Below, in pieces: positions 16,516 through 39,705 of a DNA stretch of 64,000 nucleotides. A model generated the notes under the pieces. The model saw only the letters and a program-made list of their open reading frames with translations, searched no databases and was not told where the DNA came from. The number at the start of each line of letters is the position of its first letter. Position 1 is the stretch's first letter. Position numbers and translations under genes: made by a program. The DNA comes from Rhodosorus marinus CCMP1338 (lineage: Eukaryota; Plantae; Rhodophyta): the NCBI GenBank assembly GCA_029953675.1, contig JAMWBK010000003.1:868001-932000 (forward strand). The letters run 5' to 3'.

Positions 16516-17369
16516 AAATCATTCGGTCCACTTTGACCTTCTACGAACTCGATGAGTGCTTACAGAGGGATGACGTGAAGTCTGTAGAAAGAAAACCTGT
16601 CGATTAGTTGGTACTTTAGGTCGTACGGGCCATGGCTTTAGCAGCAGAACTTCTTAGATTAACGCAGTTGTCAGGTGCCCTTTGGGCGCACGGTTTAGAA
16701 ATCTGCTAGAAGAAGCGAAAAAGTACAAACATCCGACTCGATATCTGTCTTAACTGAGGAAACAGACCGACAAAGGATACTATCCAAAGATATTTTCACT
16801 GGAAGACGACGTCTGGTCAGGCTTCGTCCCTTCAGGCAGAGGTATTTCCATCAAGCGCAGAAAAGCAATCCCAGTCTAGCCAGCATGTTAAGGTCCTGAC
16901 AGATAATCTGCAAAAGGGGAAGGATCGAATAGCAGGCCAGACGATGTGAAGATGACCGATAAACCGGCTTACTAAGAAAACAAATGAATCGACAGAGAAT
17001 ACAATCCAAAACATAACTTCGATGGAAAACGAAAGTTGACCAAACTTCGTTCTCCTAGCAGACAGCTCCATCGCACTCAATGGCAATCGCAGGGCCAGTT
17101 CGAGTATCGGTAAGGATTTACTGACAATCGGCTCCGGGACGATGACTGTGAACATTGTTCTTCAGGAAGTTTCTGTTGGATAGTGGAGTTGTGTATGAAG
17201 GAAAGATCGTTGAGTTGTTTTCCTGGTTCTCTTCTTGAAGAAGACAAAGAGAAAGAGGGCGAGAGAGAACGATGTTGTAAAGTAGTGTACAATGAGGACC
17301 TGTCTGAATTAACATTTGGAAGGACGAAAGTCTTTCTGCTGTCTGTATGTGTTTCGTTTTTTTCCCAGG

Positions 17370-18236
17370 ATGATTGTGAGGGAGTATAGGCTGGTGATGC
17401 CGTTGACTGTTGATGAGTATCGAGTTGGGCAGCTGTATATGGTTGCGAAGGCTTCACAGCAGGAGACCGGTAAGACAGCTGGTGAAGGGATTGAGATTGT
17501 GAAGAATGAGCCTTACGTTGAAAACGAGCACGGTATGGGTCCTGGGCAGTACACGGAGAAGAGGATGTACTTGAAGAGTAAAGTGCCCAGCTTCGTTCGG
17601 ATGGTGATGCCTGAGAATGCACTAGTTCTGACCGAGTATTCGTGGAATGCTTTTCCGCATTGTAAGACGGTGTATGAAAATGAATGGCTTGGACAAAAGT
17701 TCATCCTCTCCGTGGAGTCCATGCATGCAAATGAGCCAGGCCTCGCTGAGAATCCACTGAATTTGAAAGGAGCAGATCTAGAGAAGAGGAAGGTCGAATA
17801 CCTGAACATTGCATGTGAGGACTCCTATGCTCCCATGTCGAAGGGTGAGGATCCCAGGACCTTCGTTTCTAATGAATCAGGACGAGGCAAACTCGCTGCG
17901 AACTGGTTTCTTAGTCCAGCGATTCCCGTCATGTGTGCATACAAAGTTGTCCGTTTGCAGTTCAAAGTCCTCGGCCTCCAGAGGAAGGTACGAAATCAAG
18001 CTTTTACATCCCACTTCCTCGGTCTGAGATCTCGTAACTGAGCTGTGCCTTTGTTGCATTTTGGCTAGGTCGAGGAATGGGGACAATTCTACGGAATGCA
18101 GGTGCCCTTGATCCAGTACCACAGAAAGCTCTTTTGCTGGATTGATGAATGGTTTCGACTGGACATGAAGAAAATCAGGGACATGGAGCAAAAGACCCGA
18201 GATATAACAAAGCAGAAACTGCAGCAACCTGTTTAA
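17370..18236 (+). CDS. PITP: Phosphatidylinositol transfer protein (class I PITP, START-like fold)
   Basis: MIVREYRLVMPLTVDEYRVGQLYMVAK, GEGIEIVKNEPY, GQYTEK, EYSWNAFPHCKT, PVMCAYKVV, YHRKLFCWIDEWF. One intron ~17988-18068. Confidence 0.95.
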
Positions 18237-22398: not shown

Positions 22399-23683
22399 CT
22401 AGTCCTCGTTGTCCTCATCTTCGTCGTCGGACAAGTTGTCTTCCATGTCACCGAGGACGTTCTCCAACAGTTCGGCCAATTCGTCCACAGCGTCACGGGC
22501 AATCGAGTTGCTGTTCAGATTCAGCTTCTCCAGCGACGGCAGGTCAGAGCACTTTTTACCGATCTCACGGGCCCCATCGGCGGTAATAGCGTTCTCTTCG
22601 AGAGAAACTTCCTTCAGGTTCTTGTGGAGCTCTTTGTCAAGAGCATCGGCAATTGTCTTTGCACCATCGGACCCTAGCTCGTTTTCATCCACAATAAGCT
22701 TCTCTAGTCTTTTCTTCGTCTTCAGCATACGAGCAATTGCCTCCGCGCTATCCTCCGTCAGCTCATTTGTTGAAATGTCTAAAACTTTCAGGTTCGGTGC
22801 GGATTCGCAGAGTGCGTCCAAGAGCAAAATCATACCATCATCCTCGACTGACAAGTCCCTAATGACCGCATACTCCAGACTGTCACATTCCTTCAGAACA
22901 TCGGCCAACGCCTCGGCGCCTTCCTCTCCGAAAGTATTGTCACTGACGTTGATCGTTCGCAAGGACGAACAAGTGCCTAAGGCTTTGCTGATCGCAACAC
23001 TTCCCTCTCGTCCAACCCTCGTTGACGTCATTTCAAATTCTTCCAGGGATGGACACTTCTCCACCAGATAAGATGCTTCAATGGCTCCAGCAGATTCCAG
23101 CAAGTTGTTTGAAATGTGAATAGCCTGATTTCCGATAGAACAAGTGAGGGTTGGATCCAACGTTAGCCATCAACAAACGCGCCGTGCTTCGCAGTTTGAG
23201 ACGTACCTTTAGAGTAGATGATTTCGCATCTCCTAGGAGGATCTCAGCGACCACCTTCATAGCTTCGTAGTTGAGCCCGTTGTTTCGGAATGATACTCTT
23301 TTCAGCTGCTCAGACTTGTTGGAGAGCAGCTTCTTGGCTACCAGGACGCCCTTTGCACCGAGAGCATTGTCCGATATGTCGATGCTCTCAAGCTTTGGTG
23401 CTTCCTCAAAACAATCACACAAGTGCTGGAGAGACGCCAAAGCTTCCTTCTCTGGCCTCCTCGCGATTGAGTCTGCGATGTTCAAACTGAGAACGGTCTT
23501 GTTAATCTCTCTCTTCAAGAAAAAATCGCGGATCGCTTCGGCTGCTTCTGGACTATAGCTCTTTCCGGACACTACCAACTCATCAACTCCGTCCGCGATC
23601 GAGGAGAAAATCTCCAGCGCCCGTTCGCGTGTGGAAACCATCTCGCGGTCCTCACCAATGCCGCTGACGACGAACCTCGACAT
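22399..23683 (-). CDS. RANGAP: Ran GTPase-activating protein (LRR plus acidic tail)
   Basis: VSGKSYSPEAAEAI, IDISDNALGAKG, FRNNGL, HISNNLLESAGA, VSDNTFGEEG, repeated LRRs and C-terminal DMEDNLSDDEDEDNED. One intron ~23126-23207. Confidence 0.93.
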
Positions 23684-24520: not shown

Positions 24521-25759
24521 TGCCTCCGAAGAAGCGCAATGCGACTAAAGCTAAAAGAACAAACCCAAACTTTCGAGAAGAGTGTAGTACTAGACTACAT
24601 TCGGGCACAGTCCGGGGCTATCACTAGAAATGAATTCGCTGGTCCCAGAGACAAATCCACGTGAAATCAATCTTCAACGTGTAGAACTGGGCAGACAAGA
24701 ACTACAATCCGGATGCTTAACAAACGAAAAAGAATAACTGAGCGTATTCATCGAGTTTAGCTAATCGAATCAGGCTTATTGCCTAGCCTGTTGGCGAAGG
24801 GGGCGCGCCCCCCCCATAACACCCTACAAAACTCAAGGCCGGTAAACAGTTCAGTTAAAAAAGGAAGTAAATATTGTAAACTCTCGGAAGGTGTTCACTC
24901 CCCCCGGAGAAAAATGCTTTGTGAACCTTCTCGTCAAGAGTCTGAAAGCCCTCTCTAAAGGGCTGTTCGCAGCTACCATACCCGGCTCCGGAACAATTTC
25001 CCCCACAGCAACAAACCATTGCCAAAAATAAAAAAAAGAGGAAGAGGATACCAAAGAATTCCCCTCCTTCAAAAGGCGCCCAAAATACGTCTACTCTAGC
25101 TCTAATCTATCTATTTTTTCCACCTAAAGTATTTTCATGTTTTTAAATTTATTTACGACAACAGTGATTCAGTTTTTTGTTTAAAAATAAATTTATATCC
25201 CTTTGAGACCAACTATATATTTTAAGACAAATATGCTTGAGACCAAATTTATGAAAATTCTGGATCTAAAAATCCTATATGGAAAGTATCTAGTTTTATT
25301 TATTTGGTGGAAAATCTATGACTAGGACGGACAGAAACAATCGGAATTTGATTGATGTGGAGTAACATTCGCCAAAACCCTCGATTGTGAATATCGATTG
25401 ATAAAAGCGGGAGGAATTTGTGTTAATTTTTTTTTTGAGGAATGGAAAGAGAAAGATGGGACGGGTGTTGGTACATATATGCATTCAAATAGACAGGATG
25501 AGGTGGGAAGGCTCTTGGGACGGGTTCGGGTTTGGTGTGAGAAGTTTTAAGCTGGAGGCTTTAACAGAGAGAGGGGAGATGGTCAGGACAATTTTCTGCG
25601 TATGTGAAGAAGAAGAACATTGCGTTTGATTTTCGAAGGGAGGGGGGTGGGGTGGGGTTGGGGGTGTGTGTGTCTGGTGCTAGATATGTTTAGACTCGTT
25701 TGAATGGAGGTTGTTGTCGGCAAGTGTTTTTCTGGGCGGGTGTTTTGAGAGGAAGCGAG

Positions 25760-27728
25760 ATGAGTGGAGAAGGTGATGTTATGGAGCGTGTGCGTGCGCT
25801 AGGGCTCTGTTTGGATGACGCTGTTGTGACTGGCGTTTCAATTGGACTGCCGAGTGCGGACGCGAGCGGGCGTTTGCAGGAGTTCTCAAGTCCTTTTGAT
25901 TTTGAGAGACTGTTTGAAGGTGAGTAGCGACTGTGGTTTGTAGAAAGCGTGGACTGGGCGTTCGTTTTTGCCCATAGTCCAGGGCTGTGTGATTCTCGTA
26001 CTAGGGTGGTTACATTTGTACTGAGCCTGAGGTCTCGTCAACGTTTTCCTTACAGGTCTTTGCGGCATTTCAGCTTTGCCAGATGAGGATGTGAACTTAA
26101 TGTTGGAGAAGAACGTTGTTCAGGTGCGCAAAAATGAGGACGGAGTGAGAGAAAAGTATCAGTTGTCATCCCCGGAAGAGGTCATTCGGATCGCCGGTAG
26201 GATTGCTGACTTCGACCTTGCTGCACAACATGGAGTTCCGGAGTTTATTCTGCCAGCGCTGGATATCACTTTCAAGATGGCCATCAGTGTTGGACTAGAG
26301 GCACTCAAACATGCCAAGATTCGTCTAGAAAGAACTACCGCGGGGAAGATGTTATTGCCTGAGGAACTTCGAGACTCGACTGGGGTCATATTTGCTGCCA
26401 GCTTCCCTGTTTTAGACTCTTTGATAGAGGAAGTCTCGAAACATCTCAGGTACAAACTGCAGAAGCAATCAACACGAGAAAAGGTTGAAATGCTTCGTAG
26501 AATAAGCAAGAATGTGAAGTCCCAGTTTCCGGGGATCGCTAAAGTAATTCTAGGGGAGTTGGAGAGCATCGAGAGGTCGAAGGAAGATCTGAGCTATGAG
26601 TTCAACAGAAAGCTGCTCTTCCAGATCCTCGTTATGGCAAACTCCCAGTTGGCGGAATTGATTGGAGCCAGAGGCCCGAACGTTGATGTGAACGCTGCGT
26701 GTGCTTCATCCTCCATGGGGATCGCCATTGCCGAGGACTGGATACGAGTGGGGAGGGCCTCGAGGGTAATTGTTGTGGGTGCGGACAACGTGACTTCGAG
26801 GAACATGTTGCAATATGTTGGTACTGGGTTTCTGGCTCTAGGCGCGGCTAGCACCAAGGGGTGCGCAGAAGAAGCGGCTTTGCCTTTCAGTCGGAAACGG
26901 AACGGCCTTGTTTTGGGATCGGTATGTATGAATTCACCTCCCGCTGATACGGTCAGGTGTACTGACGGAAAGCGCTTTGGATCAATTCTGGTTGGACTAC
27001 AGGGAGCGGTTGGCTTGGTAATCGAATCAGAATCAGCAGCCAAAGAAAGGGATGCGGAAATTCTTAGTCGGATTCTCGCAACGAGAATTGTTAATAGCGC
27101 ATACCACGCCTCTGGGATTGACACCAAGCATGTGACAGGAGAGCTGCATGTGTTGCTGGACAGAGTTGAGAAAATTCACGGAGTCAAGGTACTTTATGAG
27201 TTTTGAAACCACGAAACTTATGAGCCATCCTGTCATCCTGTCGTTGCTAGTGCTAACCACGGAGGTATTTTGGGGTCTTTTAGAGGGAGGCGTTTGCTGA
27301 GAATGGTATTTACATAAGCCACGAGACCTTTACTTGTGTTAATGGAGGCTGTGCTGCAGTGGAGGCTAAAGCGTTGAGGGAAGGCTTTGGAGATGAAACT
27401 GCCTCAAAGCTCCTAATTGCCAATACGAAGGCTTTCACTGGTCACCCTATGGGGGCTGGAATTGAGGATGCTGTGGCTGTGATGTCCTTGCACACTGGAA
27501 GAGTTCCTCCGATACCCAGGAAGGCGGACCTCGATGAAAACCTGGGGGAGCTGAATATTTCATCCGGCGGTTCGCATGATAAATTCTATGCATTGCGGTA
27601 AGAAGCAAAGAGAGCAGCGCGAGCATGGTTACGAATACTAACTCTAGCCTTGGTCTGCATTCTGAGTATTCAGGTTTGCCGCAGGATTCGGTTCGCAATG
27701 TGTGTTCATTGCATATGGCAAGGTGTGA
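25760..27728 (+). CDS. Stand-alone beta-ketoacyl synthase (KS) domain protein, 5 exons
   Basis: Intact Cys-His-His triad: GPNVDVNAACASS (~26690), YISHETFT (~27315), NTKAFTGHPMGAGIE (~27430); C-terminal RFAAGFGSQ. Introns at ~25921-26055, 26923-27002, 27190-27283 and 27599-27673. Confidence 0.9.
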
Positions 27729-29350
27729 GACGATTTTCGTCTGGCCGTCAATTTGCTTGGAAATAGTTTCTTGTTTTTTTGACTTGATGTTCTTAGGTGG
27801 ATGGGAATCTGACCTCATTAGCTCGAATTTGGCGTATCCAATGCCGGTGGGGACGGTTCCAAATCCAAGCAGCTTGCTTCCGCGTTCATCAAAACCCGGA
27901 ATTCCTAGTTTCAGAACCTTCCCGTTTTCAGGGCACTCCAACAGCTTATTGAGCTTCTGGTTTGGATGTAGGTTGAGTGTAGCTGGTTTTGCAGCGAATT
28001 GGTCTGTCGCAGATGGTAGAAAACGAGTATTGTACAGCTGAAAACAGTGGGAAACAGTCTACCCTTCGTTGCCATACCCTGCGTAGTGGGCCATATCATA
28101 CTATCGTAAAGCACTGCTGCTCCAAATCAACAACCCCAGCCCTATCCCGAATCCCACCTTGCCAATGACCTCTGCCTATCCTTGATCAGCAAAATAGACT
28201 ACTCGCGGGTTAAAATACGTCAACTAACCTCCGCCCCCCCAAACCTCCGTTCAGTCTCCACAGTACCTAACCCACCACCAGTCAAATCAAATGATTGAAG
28301 GAGCCTGCTATTGATTGACATGCTTCGCTGGCTTATCAAATTCATTATTTTCCAAAGAAAAAACGAATCCGATGAAAAAATATTGAAATTAAAGCGATGA
28401 ACTCATGTGGATCTAAAGTGACAGCGGTGAGCGTCTTTAATGCCGCAGCCTTATTTGGACGGGTTTATCCCCCCTTGTCCCGGCGTTGTCTATATAGTAG
28501 CAGAAACTCAAAGCTCTACAAAACCATAATTCTGTTCTTATCGTCTGGAGTGAGTCTTGGTAATGTTGCCCTTTGAGGATTTCAGGCCCAGTTGAAGAAG
28601 GCCGTCCCCTCCCCCACTCCCTCCCCCACTCCGCTTTCTAGGCATTGCCAATGCTTTCACCTACAAAAAACCCAGTTTCTCCACAAGACAGAAAATTAAC
28701 ACAAAACAGCAAAATCAGGTTCAATTTCGCTACCCCTTTAAAGCAACTACCCATCATCCGAATATTCTTTAACAATATATTAATTTCGAACTTTTTGACT
28801 CTTTCACAAAGGGGCTCTTAGATGTTCTAGAAAATAAGTACATGACAGGCTGTCCCTTTTTCTAAACCGTGAAAAGGGAGGGTTTAGTTTTTTGATTAAG
28901 TAGGCAGAATTGTCCTCTGTCGGAGATGATTTTTTGTAAAAACAATTTATGAGTGTCGTTCAAGCAGGGGTGTGTGTTCTGTGTCAGACATATTGATGGA
29001 GGACTTTGGCCAGCTGTATGGGTTTAGGGTCGGATGGTTGGGGAGGGAGGGATAAGGGTGAGGAGGGGGGGGAAAAGCTTTGAGTTTTGTGGGAGTGTGA
29101 ATGGAAAAGACGATAAATTCGAAGGGTGGGAGTTCTGTAGTGTATTTGTGAGATCCTACGATGTGTTCTGAATCATGGTTTTAGTGGTGGTGGTTGGGTT
29201 GAGTGCGGGGAGGAGAGAGGTGATCGGTTTGGTTGACCTGAGGGTGTGAGGCGGGAGTGGTTTTTTCTAATTTTTTTCGCGGGAGAGAGATAGAGAGAGT
29301 AGTGATCGCGCGGGTTTGGGGTCCGCATCCGCCAGGTCTCTTTGCTAGAG

Positions 29351-32115
29351 ATGAAAGAAACTGGGGATGATATCGTCACCCTCAGGAAGAAAGCATCGCA
29401 AAAGGCGGTGAGCAAGGCCGCAATCGTGCCTCCCAGTCCGCCTGATGCGAGCGAAGGGAGCGCTGGAGAACAGGTGAGCTGGCTCTGGGCCTAGCTACTT
29501 TTTGGTGTTTTGGGAATACACCTTACCTGCCTTCATGTTGTTTTGATCGGTTTTCTAGTTGGCTGGGAATGGGGGCGTTCCAGAGAAAACGGGTGATCTG
29601 AAACTCAGGTCCGTAGGCTCTCATGCTAGGGATCTTAACGGAAAGGGCCCTTCGGATCCAGCTCCATTGCCGGTGAAGATGAATCCCGAGTCTGGAAGAG
29701 GGAGGGATAAGAGTTCTTATGCAAACTTTAACCTTAGTATTGACTTGAGAGATGCCATTCGGCAACTACGCAAGCTCGCTAGGAAGAATTTCAGGCTCGC
29801 TTTGGCCCCTGTGATTGTCTCCTGCCTGCTTTTTTATTTCTATTTTACTAACGTGGTAATCCACCCGCGTGTTACGAGAGAGTTCGTTCCGGGCCAGACT
29901 GAGATTGTCGCTGGACAGAAGGATATGAAGTCGCTCCAGCAAGGAACTTCGCTAATAGCCGCCTGCAAAGATGAGAATGGCCTACTAACGGTTTTGAGGA
30001 CTTGGCTAAAGGTCAACAACGTGGATGAGGTTGTCTTGGTGGATTGGGGTTCTGAAAAACCTTTCTCGAAGGTGCTGTCGAGACTCATGGACGTGAGCGG
30101 CATCGTCCTCGTTACTGTAGACGACGCTGGAAGCTTCAACGTCGCTAGCGCTTACAACCTGGCGATGCACTATGCCAGCCATGACATCGTGATCCGAGTT
30201 GACTGCGATCAGATATTGGAGCAGGACTTTGTTGTTTCTCACCCCCTAGCACGCGAGCCCCTTTTCTATGCCGGAAGTTGGACTGAGGCGAGGAACTCAA
30301 ATGAGCTACAGCTGAATGATGTGCTTGTAGTACGCCAAGAGTACTTCTGGAAGACGGGCGGATACGACGAGAGGATTGAAGTGCGCGGAGGTGAAGACGA
30401 AGATCTTTATGCTCGCCTCCTCGCGATTCCTAGAATGAAGAGAAGAAGTGTTAATTACGAGAAGGTTAAGCATTTACCTCCTCTGCTGGACACAAAGTCA
30501 CAATTGAGCGAATTATTATCTCCTGTCGACATCGATTGCAACAAAATAATGCTCAGTTCGCTACCAGCTTGGGATCCAAGCGCAGTTCAGGACCGAGCGC
30601 TGTACAGAATTGACGTTAGCTCGTCGGATCGCTACTTAATAAGCTTGCTGCGGTAAGTTGCAACCGCACGCTCCTGGCACGGTGCTTTTTTGCGAAAGCT
30701 CGGGTATCTTAGGCGTCGTGTTGCACCCCAACTTTTCCAAACAAGCAGGAAACCAACATCCCTGGCTGATCGTCTATCAGAGAAGACCTTCGGCGATACT
30801 CGAAAACTCGCGCTGCGGACAAGGTTGAACTCTGACTTCCGAGTTCCGAATGCGTTTCTGGAGGGAATGGATACAAGGTCCCTGGAGATGCTTCTCGGGA
30901 AGCTCTTGATGCGGGTGAGGAGCTCGGGATCTAGTAGCAAACCCACCGTGTTCTTTGCACATTGCATGCATGGACTCGGCAATAGAATACGTGCGCTCGG
31001 ATCTTCGATGGCAGTTGCACGTAATACCGGAAGGTATGTCCGCTGTTGTCTTGCCATTTGTTGCGTGATGCCATAGGAGGAGGCTCATGGCCGATTTCAT
31101 GTTTCAAATGTTGTTCACTTCCTCCAGGGAACTAGTTGTGATTTGGGATAACGATTCGCATTGTAGCGCAAAGTTTTCAGATTTGTTTGGCAACGACTAC
31201 CCTGTCATTGAAAATTTGAAGGCGACGTTCCCCTTCACTCAGGAGGCGTTGACAGACCCTGCATGGGCCACTGTCAAAGCTTTTAACTATATGGATACTG
31301 AGGAGGGCTCTGAGAAGAACAAGGAGGTCACAGAATTGAAGGGAAACCACATCTACTACAAAGGTAGCAGCGGATGAAAAGCCTAAGCTCAATCCTATTC
31401 AGGTTTCCTCGAGAGACCAGGTTCTGATTCCACATACCCACGTACATGCTATTCACCATAGGAGCGTTCATTATGAACGCGCCGAAGCTATCGTCCTGGA
31501 AAATGGACAACGACGAACTTGCAAAGCTCAAGCCATCCGCCGATGTTCAAGAAATCCTGGACAAGTTTGATCCGAGACAGGACTTTTCCGACGTCGTGTC
31601 AGTGCACATTCGGAATAGGGGCCTTGACACGGACATTGACGGAGTTGACAGTAAACGTGAGTATACAGAGAAAGGCGCCGCGGACATGCAGTACTGGAGG
31701 GAGCGGAGCCATTACACAAATTTTGTGAAGAAGGTATGCATTTTCGCTGAAAACCGTCAGAGTACCAAAATGCTGGAGAGAAGCTGACCCTCAAGAACGT
31801 TACCGCAACCAGATGCAAGAGATAGTCACGGCTGAGCCACAGACAAAGTTTTATCTATCTTCGGATACGGTGCACATACTCGACGAAATGAAGAGATTGT
31901 TTCCTGGGAAGATTCTGGTCACTCCCAGAGATTGTGACGATCGAGGGGGGGATTGTATCAAGTATGCTTTGGCTGACCTGTATCTATTAGCGCGTGGAAA
32001 ATATGTTCTTGGTAGCAACTGGAGTTCGTTTACGGAGGCAGCGCAAAGACTAGGGGGTTTGCAGGGGTTTATGGCGGGTCGCGACTTTGCAAACGAAACT
32101 CTCTCTACGAACTAG
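29351..32115 (+). CDS. Type II membrane two-domain glycosyltransferase (GT-A/GT7C-like plus fucosyltransferase-fold)
   Basis: TM LALAPVIVSCLLFYFYF; GT-A motifs LVDWGS, RVDCD, GGYDERIEVRGGEDEDL; second domain HCMHGLGNRIRAL, VSVHIRN, FYLSSD, DLYLLARGKYVLGSNWSSFTEAA. Confidence 0.82.
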
Positions 32116-32337: not shown

Positions 32338-34824
32338 TCAAGTCGCGGCCGCCGACACTGGGACTGCTTCTTCAAAGTTGGGCTGACCAGTTGTTAGCAT
32401 TACTTCTTCCCAACTGCGACTTTCGACATCAACCTAGGGGTGGATAAGCGCTCACAGGAAACGAGTGAGCGATTGTGGACCTTCTAGGTTGTAGAACGGC
32501 CGTCCTACCTCCATCCTTCCTTGAGAAATAACTTCCATTGGGATGTAGACGTAATGAGTTCGAATAAGCCCGACAGTGAAACCACTATCGTTTCGATATA
32601 TTCGAAGGCACAAGATTACCGCAGTTAGCAAAGGCCTGTACACGAGATCGTGATCGAATTTCTGCCTAGAGTCGTAGGGACATTTGAATTTTGCTCACGT
32701 GTAACCTGCAAAAGCGCCATGCACTGCATTCTGTGCCAACATGGCACAGTAGAGGTTGTCTGCTGCGTTCGGAGGAACAGTTCGGATCATATAAGTAGGA
32801 TCAATGTACCTAAGATAGTTGGTGAAGAGCGAAAATGTCAAATTGATTGTCCAGAGCTCGAACCAAGAACGTTGTACACTCTGTGTTTCGTACTTGAGCG
32901 TGACCTCGTCTTGTCTGAGGGAATTAGTTATATGCTCTTTCAACCAGAGCCCGACGTCGGGAAGTCTCATATTTCCAGATGCGTCAGTCTCGTTCTTAAT
33001 CTCACTTTCAATATGCATTCCGGCGCCTTCCGCAACGACAACCACGCAGTGGCCTTTTCGATGAAGCACTTTTCGAATATGTGCAATAAGGCCCTTCGCG
33101 GAGAGAAAGAATATTAGATTGTGGCATTCAGAAATCCATACTGTTCAATGCTCATAAAGGGATACGAGAGCTGGTTTGGACGGGATTCACCTTCTCCCCT
33201 TCTAGAACGAAGGGTACTTCTGGAATCAAGCAAACGTCTACATCTCTTGATGCCACTGTAGCCGCCATCGTAATGTGCCCTGAATGTCTCCCCATAAGTT
33301 TCACCAATCCAATTCCTACTTACGCGCGGAGGTTGGAATGGTAAGAACAAACTCACAACAAAGAATTGGAGATGCTGGGTGCCTTCTGACCATTAAAGTA
33401 ACTCGTGGCTTCAGTTTTGGCGCTCTTGATGGCTCTCTGAGCTTCCTCGACTGCGGTAGCAAAGCCAAAACTCCTGTCTATGAGTGCTATATCGTTGTCT
33501 ACTGTTTTCGGGATACCAATGACCGCATAGGGAAGTTTCCTCGATCTCAGCTCGTCTTGGGAAGGAAAGCAAAAAAGAAACAAAAAGGACTAGCAGAGTG
33601 AGTATTTCTGCTCATGTCCTCTCGGGAGAGAGTTGTGAAGACTCCTTGTTCCAAGGCGTCGGTCACTAGTAGCCACTCGAGATGAACTCAAGTCGAAAAC
33701 TCGAACCTCGCAGGGATTCTATATAGGTCGATATGGTCGATGCGAAGACCACTCTAACTGTCGCAAGGAACAAGGCGCGACTATTGAAAGACTGTCTTTG
33801 CACAAAGGAACGTGCTGCTCGAAGAAACGATTTCCTTACCAAAGACTTTGATCGCTCCCCGATGGCTTCCGTCTCCTCCAATGACAAAAACCATGTTGAA
33901 TCCGAAATCGACAATTGCATCCACGATCATCCGCGTGCTATGGCCTCCGCGGGAGGACCCTAAGTAAGAGCCTCCATCGTGATGGATATCGTCAACTTCC
34001 TCATCCTGTGATGGTGCAAGGGTTCAGTTTGCCGAGTGGAAAAGGGGCATCAGGCTCGGCAAAAGCAAAACGTTCAGAAAGGCCGGAATGCGGTGTTACC
34101 GTTAACGGTTTGATCTCATACTCCGGTTCATAAAAACCGCGAAATCCAAACGGCACGCCATATACTTCTCTTACACCGTACGTGTACTTCAGGCACATGT
34201 AAATCTCCCTAATAACCGTATTCAAACCAGGGCACAGACCTCCACATGTGACAATGGCAGGCTGATCACCGGACAAGAGAGGAAATTCTGTCAGATAGAA
34301 GGCAAAGCGAGCTAAAATTTCTAAGTCTCCCTGCTCAAGCATACCTTTGCCTTTCTCGGATCGTGCAAAATCGCCTTTCGAGGTCCGCCTCTCAAGAACT
34401 CCCTTGAAACCGTCTCATGTTTCGTATGGCTCACAATATCAAGGAGTACAGTCTCAGAATTTGACACGAAAATATTCTCGCCTACCCCTTGTGCTCTGTA
34501 TGGACTAGGAAGAGACTCCACATCCAGGAAATCTGATATCTACGTTTCCATCATCCCACCAATCATTCAGTTCTAAGTCCACGAGATACGCCCCGTTGTC
34601 CAGACGCATACCTTGCAGGGAATGAAGTTCCCAACATCATCCTCGACTGTTGAGCCCACTATCTTCGTATAGCTTGCCTCCGCCTGCTTGGCTATGGACT
34701 GGATCTTGGGCTGATCATGTACAGAGGCCACATCCTCCAGCGACTCCTGATGCAGCTTCGCAATCAACTCCATCGTATTCGTCCGAATCATTCGACTCGA
34801 CTCTCGTTTCCCACTTGAAGCCAT
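32338..34824 (-). CDS. PFK: ATP-dependent 6-phosphofructokinase (plant/group X type), multi-exon
   Basis: [41 protein letters not shown] (Gly form indicates ATP), [63 protein letters not shown]. Confidence 0.95.
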
Positions 34825-37935: not shown

Positions 37936-38882
37936 TCCACAATTGCTGATGAATTTGCGTAGAGAGAAACAAAAAATTGAGACTTGAAACAAGATGGAAT
38001 TCAGCCGTGCAGAGGTCGGACATTCCTACCGAACGGCAACGCTACCCAACGTAGCGCATAGTTCTACATCTTACAGGAGCTCTATGCAGAAACAGTCAGC
38101 GGAAAGTCGGCACCGTCCTTGCGCGCGACGTTCTCGGCTACTAGGGCTGGAACTGGATATCTGCCGTGCCCCTCAGAGAAATCGCGTCGCCCACACCAAT
38201 TCCACTGCTGGCAAGTTTAATCAAATGGAGGCGCACTCGACAACGAGCTCAGCGAGAGGCAATCTCCTACACAAGGGTACACATCCATGTCTTCCAACGC
38301 ATCCTGAAAAACAAAACCTTTCTGGTCAACAACGGGCCCGCTTCATACAGGCCCAACGAGGACGGGCTGCTTAAAGAAGTCTTGGAAGAAAGTAGTCGCA
38401 GTAGTGACACCCCAGAGATCAACCAAGGTAGCGAATATCTATCTATTCATTAACACTCTCAATTCACCGGTGAGATTCCTTCGTTTCCATTGCCTTTTAA
38501 TGGAATAACTCCTCGTCGAGAATTGGTTGGTAACACTTCCCTCAACAAATTGGTCGTCAGCGGGACGGGCGTGGAGATGACCCTCTCCATGTGTAAGAGC
38601 TGTGACACTTCGGGAAATGTATTCCGGACAGAAAGGGAGGGGGTCATTGAGGTAAATCAGAGTTGGTGCGAGCGGAAGAGCCGAGGTGAGGGACCTTCGA
38701 AAGATATTCTGGTCGGGAGTCCGCGGTTATAAGAATTATTGCAAGCCGTTTTTTCGGAAAGGTAATTTTAGGACGAGGTTAGAGGGGAGCCAAGCTGAGG
38801 TTGGTGGTGACGAGAGTCTTTTGACTTTTGTGGGTAGGTTTGCTTCGAAAGTATTTTCGTTTCTTGTAGTTTGAGGGCAAGC

Positions 38883-39705
38883 ATGGGAGGAGATGGGGGT
38901 ACATTGAACAACTCCCGCATGGAGTTGGTACGTGTGAGAAAAGAGATGATGAAGAAAGGGAGTTCCTCAGTAGTGGAGAAGGATGTAAAGGAGAGGGATA
39001 GGTGGATGACGTGTGCAGTTTCAAGGGAGCGTCTGAAGATTCCGGTGGTTGCTTGTAGACTAGGGTATTTGTATAACAAAGAGGCACTTATTAACTTGAT
39101 TTTGGACTCGGCACGGAGGACGAGGATGGCAGAGTTTGCGCACGTTCGTTCCTTGAAAGACATGCTTGAGTGCAAACTTGAGCTTGTGGAAGACGGAAAA
39201 AATGCAGTTTTCAAGTGCCCAATATCTTTGAAAGAGGCAACAGGGGCGATTAAGTTTTCTGTCATGTGGGGTTGTGGACATGTCGTATCTGACCAGGCTT
39301 TGAATCAGCTTAAGAAGGAAGAGAAGAAATGCGTTCTGTGCGAGGAAACGTTTACAGACCTTGTAAAGATACACCCTGATGACAAGGTAAGAATGATTTT
39401 CTCGAGAAACTTGCAGGTTTATGTTGTGACTTACATTCCCTCGCTTGCCAACGTATGTCCAGACGAGAACAGAATTGCGTGAACAGCTTGAGGCTAAACA
39501 AGCTAAGAAAAAGAAGGACCGGAAGAAGAAGCCTGATGAGACTACCAAAGTGGATCAGCCGAAGAAGAAACAAAGGGTCTCTGCGCCGGATGAGAAGACG
39601 CCAAAGATTTACGAATCACTGTTCACGAAAGGACACGATCACAAGCATACTGCTAACGCCAGGGGTTCCTTCACTGGAGTCTCTCTGCGTCCTTCTGGGG
39701 TCTGA
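38883..39705 (+). CDS. RTF2: Replication termination factor 2 (Rtf2 RING-like)
   Basis: MGGDGGT start, RWMTCAVS, CRLGYLYNKEA, FAHVRSLKD, FKCPIS, WGCGHVVS, CVLC, Lys-rich tail and YESLF. One intron. Confidence 0.93.

Follow-up and report, generated by a model that had tools for sequence, protein, structure and literature searches.

A distinct, experimentally uncharacterised ketosynthase clade, possibly linked to mevalonate entry, is represented by a free-standing gene in a Rhodosorus-like red alga

The ketosynthase gene and its surroundings

The DNA analyzed here is a stretch of 64,000 nucleotides from Rhodosorus marinus CCMP1338 (contig JAMWBK010000003.1; hereafter the window, in whose numbering all positions are given), and it carries on its plus strand, at 25760-27728, a gene for a beta-ketoacyl synthase (ketosynthase, KS). 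The gene has five exons and four introns, all bounded by GT and AG, and spliced translation of its 1581-nt coding sequence (CDS) gives a protein of 526 aa. The closest database match is P0001, a 526-aa protein from the MMETSP transcriptome of a related R. marinus strain, which is 96% identical to the window protein and differs from it by 23 substitutions and no indels, with the same first and last residues. Because P0001 is collinear across the junctions, the start and the stop, the gene model is backed by an independent transcript; this nuclear gene of a Rhodosorus-like red alga has introns and is transcribed. Only ~20 residues precede the conserved core, much as in an archaeal free-standing homologue, and the in-frame sequence upstream of the ATG at 25760 contains stops and no ATG, so that there is no space for a transit peptide. 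The features of the gene are as follows.

25760..27728 (+): coding span of the ketosynthase, ATG at 25760 and TGA at 27726-27728, from the spliced translation with P0001 collinear
25760..25919 (+): exon 1, residues 1-54; the N-terminus is short, and the first beta strand is VVTGVSIGLP
25920..26055 (+): intron 1, 136 nt, GTGAGT...CAG; junction ERLFEG/LCGISAL identical to P0001
26056..26921 (+): exon 2, residues 54-342, N-terminal half with the family-specific insertions and the active-site Cys
26403..26408 (+): Phe170-Pro171 in a FASSFP-type motif; Phe170 corresponds to FabF Ile108 on the floor of the acyl pocket and is Phe in 100 of 101 homologues, and Pro171 is invariant
26412..26588 (+): family-specific insertion, residues 173-231, a predicted long helical hairpin lying opposite a gap in FabF (hhalign)
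26595..26654 (+): YEFNRKLLFQILVMANSQLAE, residues 234-253, including Lys239 and Asn249 of the signature typical of free-standing copies (Arg and His in copies embedded in larger proteins)
26700..26702 (+): codon of the active-site Cys269 (NAACASSS), equivalent to FabF C163 (hhalign) and invariant in 101 homologues
26922..27002 (+): intron 2, 81 nt, GTATGT...CAG; junction LVLGS/GAVGL as in P0001
27003..27188 (+): exon 3, residues 343-404, from the spliced translation
27189..27283 (+): intron 3, 95 nt, GTACTT...TAG; junction GVK/REAF, against GIK/REAF in P0001
27284..27597 (+): exon 4, residues 405-509, carrying both catalytic His residues and the Lys
27317..27334 (+): SHETFT, residues 416-421; His417 corresponds to FabF H303, and Glu418, invariant in the clade, replaces the Gly of HGTGT
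27428..27445 (+): KAFTGH, residues 453-458; Lys453 corresponds to FabF K335 and His458 to FabF H340
27598..27673 (+): intron 4, 76 nt, GTAAGA...CAG; junction YALR/FAAGFGSQ as in P0001
27674..27728 (+): exon 5, residues 509-526 and the stop, with the FAAGFGSQ gating loop
27675..27698 (+): FAAGFGSQ, residues 510-517; Phe514 corresponds to the FabF gating residue Phe400

In a profile alignment with E. coli FabF the protein also retains Glu431 (FabF E314), in addition to the Cys, His, Lys and Phe equivalents listed above, and Cys269, His417, Lys453 and His458 are invariant across 101 homologues. The encoded free-standing beta-ketoacyl synthase is predicted to have the FabF/FabB fold, and its apparatus for decarboxylative Claisen condensation is complete.

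The genes around it are ordinary eukaryotic housekeeping genes, without lipid or polyketide partners. The neighboring open reading frames (ORFs) encode a phosphatidylinositol transfer protein (PITP; 17316-18041, plus strand), a leucine-rich repeat (LRR)/RanGAP-like protein (22399-23683, minus strand), a family-2 glycosyltransferase (GT2; 29559-30656, plus strand), phosphofructokinase exons (32695-34342, minus strand) and Rtf2 (38871-39482, plus strand). The GC content is 0.50 in the CDS and 0.43-0.50 in the introns, and the mean for the window is 0.48. We queried the window by tblastn with 130 homologues, including their acyltransferase (AT), acyl carrier protein (ACP), HMG-CoA synthase (HMGS) and methyltransferase-like parts, and with five complete megasynthases; all matches were confined to the KS gene, and no AT, ACP, ketoreductase (KR), dehydratase (DH) or HMGS was found in the 64 kb.

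Three smaller features lie close by. A G-rich and then GT-repeat tract (GGGAGGGGGGTGGGGTGGGGTTGGGGGTGTGTGTGT; 25638-25674, plus strand) precedes the start codon by ~90-120 nt, in the presumed promoter or 5' untranslated region. On the minus strand, a 164-aa ORF at 27447-27941, with no Pfam match, overlaps the KS gene at its 3' end, across exons 4 and 5; an exon of a convergent neighbor might account for the first ~45 residues of this ORF, and the remainder is probably a chance ORF. Downstream of the KS gene, at intergenic positions 28607-28632, CCCTCCCCCACT stands in a short, perfect tandem array of 2.2 copies.

A clade apart from FabF/FabB and canonical polyketide ketosynthases

Pfam gave weak matches to the KS N- and C-domains in the window protein and a PF08545 match to a 38-residue stretch around the Cys only, and it detected neither KAsynt_C_assoc (the KS-AT linker) nor an AT. 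The NCBIfam fabF model (TIGR03150) scored 119.4 bits against a cutoff of 493.75, its match limited to residues 243-516, and a sequence search of the PDB reached FabF at E = 3e-20, restricted to the C-terminal two thirds. The closest solved structures were FabF and the mitochondrial beta-ketoacyl-ACP synthase (KAS). An AlphaFold2 model based on 101 homologues (predicted local distance difference test (pLDDT) 92.8, predicted template modeling score (pTM) 0.92) found FabF structures best in Foldseek, over the full length, with a template modeling (TM) score of 0.87 on the target and ~20% identity.

We use the name KS-X for the group to which the protein belongs, namely the second KS domain of a set of PfaA-like megasynthases together with its free-standing relatives. 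Identity of the window protein to members of this group is 42-54%, against ~20% to FabF, and all the invariant positions of KS-X are present in it (C269, H417-E418-T419, E431, K453, H458, F170-P171, F312 and AGFGSQ). In a neighbor-joining (NJ) tree with Kimura distances, with a small outgroup of E. coli FabF and FabB and five canonical polyketide synthase (PKS) KS domains, KS-X stands apart from both FabF/FabB and the canonical PKS domains in 100 of 100 bootstraps. With FabF (KAS II), KS-X shares the thiolase-type fold over its full length, the Cys-His-His and Lys set and the gating Phe, but it has SHET(F/Y/C)T with an invariant Glu in place of HGTGT, AGFGSQ in place of GFGG, an extra N-terminal beta hairpin and an added helical hairpin of ~60 residues; the window protein, moreover, is predicted to lack an organelle targeting peptide. 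The added hairpin, which follows the FASSFP loop and precedes the F(N/D)RK(L/F)LF helix, is kept in the homologues at variable length, and in the window protein its helices are predicted at residues 173-207 and 212-231 with pLDDT of about 88-92. The residues of the acyl pocket are also bulkier in KS-X than in FabF: the position of FabF I108 is Phe170 (100 of 101 sequences), that of G198 is I, L, V, F or M, and that of L197 is W, Y or F.

The group is large. A phmmer search at E <= 1e-30 returned 471 KS-X clusters at 50% identity, and scanning one genome for each GTDB species revealed relatives in at least 588 species, mainly of Chloroflexota, Myxococcota, Acidobacteriota, Actinomycetota and Thermoplasmatota. 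In complete prokaryotic loci the KS-X match lies ~1000 residues into single ORFs of 2600-3260 aa with the architecture KS-AT-[KS-X]-ACP(2-6)-KR-DH, at times followed by a C-terminal phosphopantetheinyl transferase (PPTase), and the window protein is 40-45% identical to these embedded domains. The operons recurrently place an acyl-CoA dehydrogenase upstream of the megasynthase and a PPTase and acyl-CoA carboxylase subunits downstream (for example L052:5189-21213, L010:5082-18634, L004 and L002, Thermoplasmatota archaea included); in one of them (L002), electron transfer flavoprotein genes stand beside the acyl-CoA dehydrogenase. Taken together, the dehydrogenase, two-KS megasynthase, PPTase and carboxylase look like a self-contained system resembling a fatty acid synthase (FAS). 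One KS-X-containing PKS cluster is immediately preceded by two genes for aromatic amino-acid ammonia-lyases (L003:3220-6341), which suggests an aromatic starter unit for that variant.

The nearest described relatives of the embedded form are PfaA of the polyunsaturated fatty acid (PUFA) synthases (KS-malonyl-AT-ACPn-KR-DH) and the PfaA-like 'secondary lipid' synthases, whose architecture the KS-X hosts share; a KS-X megasynthase scores 1181 bits with the PfaA model TIGR02813, above its cutoff of 1010. Classical PfaA, however, has no second KS between the AT and the ACPs, and the KS-X loci that we examined are without PfaC and PfaD and have the acyl-CoA dehydrogenase, PPTase and acyl-CoA carboxylase instead. 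The window gene departs further, being the KS-X domain alone, free-standing, and bearing Asn249 and Tyr414. Unlike the canonical N-terminal KS of type I PKSs and PfaA, its product has no DTACSS- or HGTGT-type motifs and no downstream linker and AT. Single-domain type I KS transcripts have reportedly been described in dinoflagellates, and these too are eukaryotic, nuclear, free-standing and related to megasynthase domains; they fall, however, in the canonical type I PKS clade with the usual motifs, whereas KS-X is nearer FabF by blastp, which gave 80 bits to FabF and at most 54 bits to the canonical KS domains of the same megasynthases. The literature that we searched held no description of the KS-X clade or of a two-KS PfaA-like operon, an absence that is not proof; KS-X is a distinct and experimentally uncharacterised clade.

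Two other accounts of the gene have to be set against these data. That it is a diverged but ordinary organellar FabF/KAS II, or the mitochondrial KAS of type II fatty acid synthesis, might be argued from the identity of the best solved structures and from the UniRef label on P0001, 'beta-ketoacyl-ACP synthase I', but the score far below the cutoff of the fabF equivalog, the identity to FabF less than half of that to KS-X, the separate clade in every bootstrap, the substitution of both the HGTGT and the GFGG motifs and the absent transit peptide make this very unlikely. An artefact, either a fragment of a misassembled PKS or bacterial contamination, is scarcely credible: the relatives are indeed domains of giant bacterial proteins, but the gene is interrupted by four spliceosomal GT-AG introns, and its ATG and stop are its own and agree with the transcriptome protein. 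Its GC content is near that of the window, its flanks are typically eukaryotic, and the window contains no other megasynthase-like sequence. An earlier note on this stretch, written from the letters alone, had described a complete Cys-His-His KS with the motifs SHETFT, YEFNRKLLFQILVMANSQLAE and FAAGFGSQ, four introns, no transit peptide and no AT, ACP or KR domains, and each of these is borne out by the FabF alignment, the junctions of P0001, the N-terminus and the tblastn search of the window. The likeness that it drew to a KS of large uncharacterised bacterial FAS/PKS-like proteins agrees with the identity to embedded KS-X, and neither outcome that it named as contrary was encountered, since the phylogeny, run as a check, separates the protein from FabF/FabB, and P0001 and the tblastn search speak against a fragment of a larger misassembled PKS gene.

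Free-standing copies and fusions to HMG-CoA synthase

Free-standing KS-X proteins of 471-561 aa occur in metagenome-assembled genomes of Heimdallarchaeota (P0011/L001 and P0039) and on an archaeal contig, L055. Among eukaryotes, KS-X is found besides Rhodosorus in the glaucophyte Gloeochaete, in the haptophytes Prymnesium, Haptolina and Emiliania, and in Ectocarpus. An analysis of alignment columns separates these from the embedded domains: Lys239, Asn249 and Tyr414 are present in every eukaryotic and archaeal free-standing sequence, mostly with S169, L390 and F510, whereas all 127 of the 127 embedded sequences have H249 and F414, mostly with R239, A169, M390 and L510. The window protein has Q76, S169, K239, N249, L390, Y414, C427 and F510, as do all eukaryotic and most archaeal free-standing copies. 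A megasynthase fragment from a Heimdall-type archaeon (P0020) bears the embedded signature, and the KS-X of L055 is intermediate, with N249 and Y414, yet A169, M390 and L510. The same contig encodes a Ras-family small GTPase (L055:20511-21272), which would fit an Asgard origin of the contig. In the neighborhoods of the archaeal free-standing copies (L001, L055 and L090-92) only a short-chain dehydrogenase/reductase lies nearby; no HMGS, thiolase or ACP was seen there, and these loci give no hint of function.

Given the shared signature and the other algal and archaeal carriers, the domain was freed outside Rhodosorus and before it. A sensible reading of the sequences is that the domain was released a single time, or under one common constraint. 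In the NJ tree the HMGS-fused eukaryotic subclade has 100% bootstrap support and the subclade containing Rhodosorus 70%, with 42% for all eukaryotes and 41% for eukaryotes plus the archaeal free-standing copies, and the outgroup states do not polarize the signature residues. Values of 41-42% support no particular donor or direction of transfer, and we do not claim an Asgard origin for the gene. The earlier note had proposed a domain excised by horizontal gene transfer and domesticated; the relation of a free-standing protein to a megasynthase domain stands, but the proposal, read as an event in the Rhodosorus lineage, is not supported in view of the carriers in other algae and Heimdall-type archaea.

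The clue to function comes from a second group of eukaryotic proteins, in which KS-X is fused to HMGS. In Ectocarpus P0119 and ~25 metagenomic clusters, Pfam places the HMGS C-terminal domain directly N-terminal of KS-X. On a 1.68-Mb contig (L005, 8287-12043, plus strand), the HMGS exons come first, then the C-terminal end of HMGS and then KS-X, all on the same strand; a single uninterrupted ORF takes in the end of HMGS together with the whole of KS-X, and the remaining HMGS lies just upstream. In P0376 and P0341 both Pfam halves of HMGS precede KS-X within a single protein, the HMGS of P0376 being near-complete though cut at its N-terminus, and P0289 and P0419 are further fusions of this kind. 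The carriers are Ectocarpus and diatom-like contigs. The HMGS part of L005 is of the canonical eukaryotic type and carries the motifs GTET, NACYGG and FHSPY; in the PDB it matches Brassica HMGS best (E = 5e-78), and its nearest named relatives are diatom HMGS. We found no description of an HMGS-KS fusion in the literature searched.

Candidate functions and their implications

HMGS consumes acetoacetyl-CoA, and the fusion of a KS to it suggests that this substrate is what KS-X produces, through a decarboxylative condensation. In the mechanism that we envisage, Cys269 would take the acyl group and His417 and His458 would decarboxylate a malonyl thioester to give a beta-ketoacyl thioester, so that acetyl-CoA and malonyl-CoA would yield acetoacetyl-CoA, to be handed to HMGS at the entry to the mevalonate pathway. 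As neither a targeting peptide nor a carrier-protein partner is apparent, the enzyme would act in the cytosol, and the CoA dependence of HMGS hints at the kind of partner that fits a cytosolic protein without an ACP. The bulkier residues at the positions of FabF I108 (Phe170), L197 and G198 are a hint, though only a hint from the alignment, of a pocket for short chains. In the megasynthases, priming would fall to KS-X and elongation to the canonical KS at the N-terminus. Glaucophytes, haptophytes and brown algae are groups that retain the mevalonate pathway, and these groups cover the named KS-X eukaryotes. That KS-X is a cytosolic short-chain condensing enzyme supplying acetoacetyl-CoA for HMGS and mevalonate entry is, on these comparisons, the function that we tentatively favor, well short of regarding it as established.

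There is precedent for such an arrangement. Streptomyces NphT7, encoded beside HMGS, forms acetoacetyl-CoA by decarboxylative condensation, and as a working analogy KS-X would share with it both the condensation of malonyl-CoA and acetyl-CoA to feed HMGS and the genetic coupling to HMGS, achieved for KS-X by fusion. NphT7 is, however, a KAS III of the FabH type with a Cys-His-Asn triad, whereas KS-X is of the FabF type with Cys-His-His, and the homology of the two extends only to the thiolase superfamily. The archaeal thiolase/HMG-CoA synthase/DUF35 complex offers a conceptual precedent, in that HMGS is physically coupled to the step that forms the acetoacetyl group, although there the step is catalyzed by a non-decarboxylative thiolase with a scaffold and not by a fused, malonyl-dependent KS.

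Several observations weigh against a role in acetoacetyl-CoA synthesis. The haptophyte copies carry a hydrophobic anchor at the N-terminus, for which mevalonate entry provides no explanation, and in one eukaryotic subgroup KS-X follows a degenerate class-I-methyltransferase-like domain that is without the GxGxG motif for S-adenosylmethionine (P0003, P0005, P0006, P0017, P0051, P0291 and L089:10001-12700; a homologue search with P0051 returned 15 proteins). Among these, P0005 is assigned to the ciliate Euplotes focardii but may stem from its algal food, and the L089 contig also bears a BAHD-type transferase. The pocket comparison rests on a profile alignment near an indel, and the B. subtilis FabF I108F variant (PDB 4LS6) reportedly still functions in vivo. 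Embedded KS-X clearly serves ACP-bound chemistry in a PUFA-synthase-like protein. In P0341 (1088 aa) the HMGS-like domain has VTSAS and GAKDGG for GTET and NACYGG and, by eye, has lost the catalytic Glu and Cys, so that it may be a pseudo-enzyme domain and the function of KS-X cannot always need an active HMGS; the protein also has an N-terminal hydrophobic segment. At the HMGS locus of Seminavis robusta (L093) KS-X is neither fused nor adjacent, and the fusion is thus lineage-restricted. Finally, the literature searched contained no biochemically characterized member of the clade.

It is about as likely that KS-X serves an unknown lipid or polyketide pathway, and a trans-acting elongating KS of an undescribed cytosolic route, with ACP, AT and reductases encoded separately elsewhere in the genome and with the chemistry of the PfaA-like megasynthase carried over, is accordingly a serious contender, if one that we would not call probable. 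The catalytic residues are intact, the nearest relatives belong to PfaA-like iterative synthases that also contain ACPs, KR and DH, the methyltransferase-like fusions and membrane anchors suit specialized lipid chemistry better than mevalonate entry, and the dinoflagellate transcripts provide a precedent. On the other hand, AT, ACP, KR and DH are absent from the window and we saw no eukaryotic homologue fused to any of them, Asn249 and Tyr414 near the active site differ from the embedded copies in a way that suggests a changed partner or substrate, and the sole catalytic fusion partner seen in eukaryotes is the CoA-dependent HMGS. The undescribed route with trans-acting partners of which the earlier note had spoken is thus retained as a rival, but its partners did not appear in the 64 kb, and the clue of the HMGS fusion points elsewhere. 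A further proposal would have KS-X act as a malonyl-thioester decarboxylase or a non-condensing scaffold, in the manner of KS-Q, chain length factor (CLF) or the KS0 proteins of beta-branching cassettes, supplying acetyl groups or organizing an HMGS complex. Bacterial HMGS cassettes pair a decarboxylating KS with HMGS, and the association with HMGS, together with the degenerate HMGS of P0341, could be read in this light. Decarboxylating KS, CLF and KS0 proteins, however, have Gln or Ser in place of the Cys that is invariant at position 269 in 101 of 101 sequences, and the HMGS in the fusion is not of the PksG type but of the canonical, CoA-dependent kind found in eukaryotes, which renders this proposal decidedly improbable.

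Acetoacetyl-CoA synthesis, if it is the function, can be combined with the history of the gene. KS-X would then be an irreversible, thiolase-independent entry to the mevalonate pathway in many algae and some Asgard archaea, with channelling through the HMGS fusion in ochrophytes, and the free-standing gene would have a single archaeal-eukaryotic origin from the priming KS of a PfaA-like megasynthase for fatty acids or secondary lipids that is widespread but undescribed. That both parts hold together is conceivable and rather doubtful.

Ketosynthases are much studied, yet KS-X, with hundreds of clusters at 50% identity and a presence in at least 588 prokaryotic species and several major algal groups, has no characterized member that we could find. 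Embedded KS-X points to a FAS-like system, self-contained and as yet undescribed, in five prokaryotic phyla, and the signature common to the eukaryotic and Heimdall-type free-standing copies is a small, testable case of gene sharing between archaea and eukaryotes. If the HMGS fusion reflects function, algae would possess a second, decarboxylation-driven entry to sterol and isoprenoid synthesis, and such an entry, if true, would be relevant to the metabolic engineering of algae and to flux control at the thermodynamically weak thiolase step.

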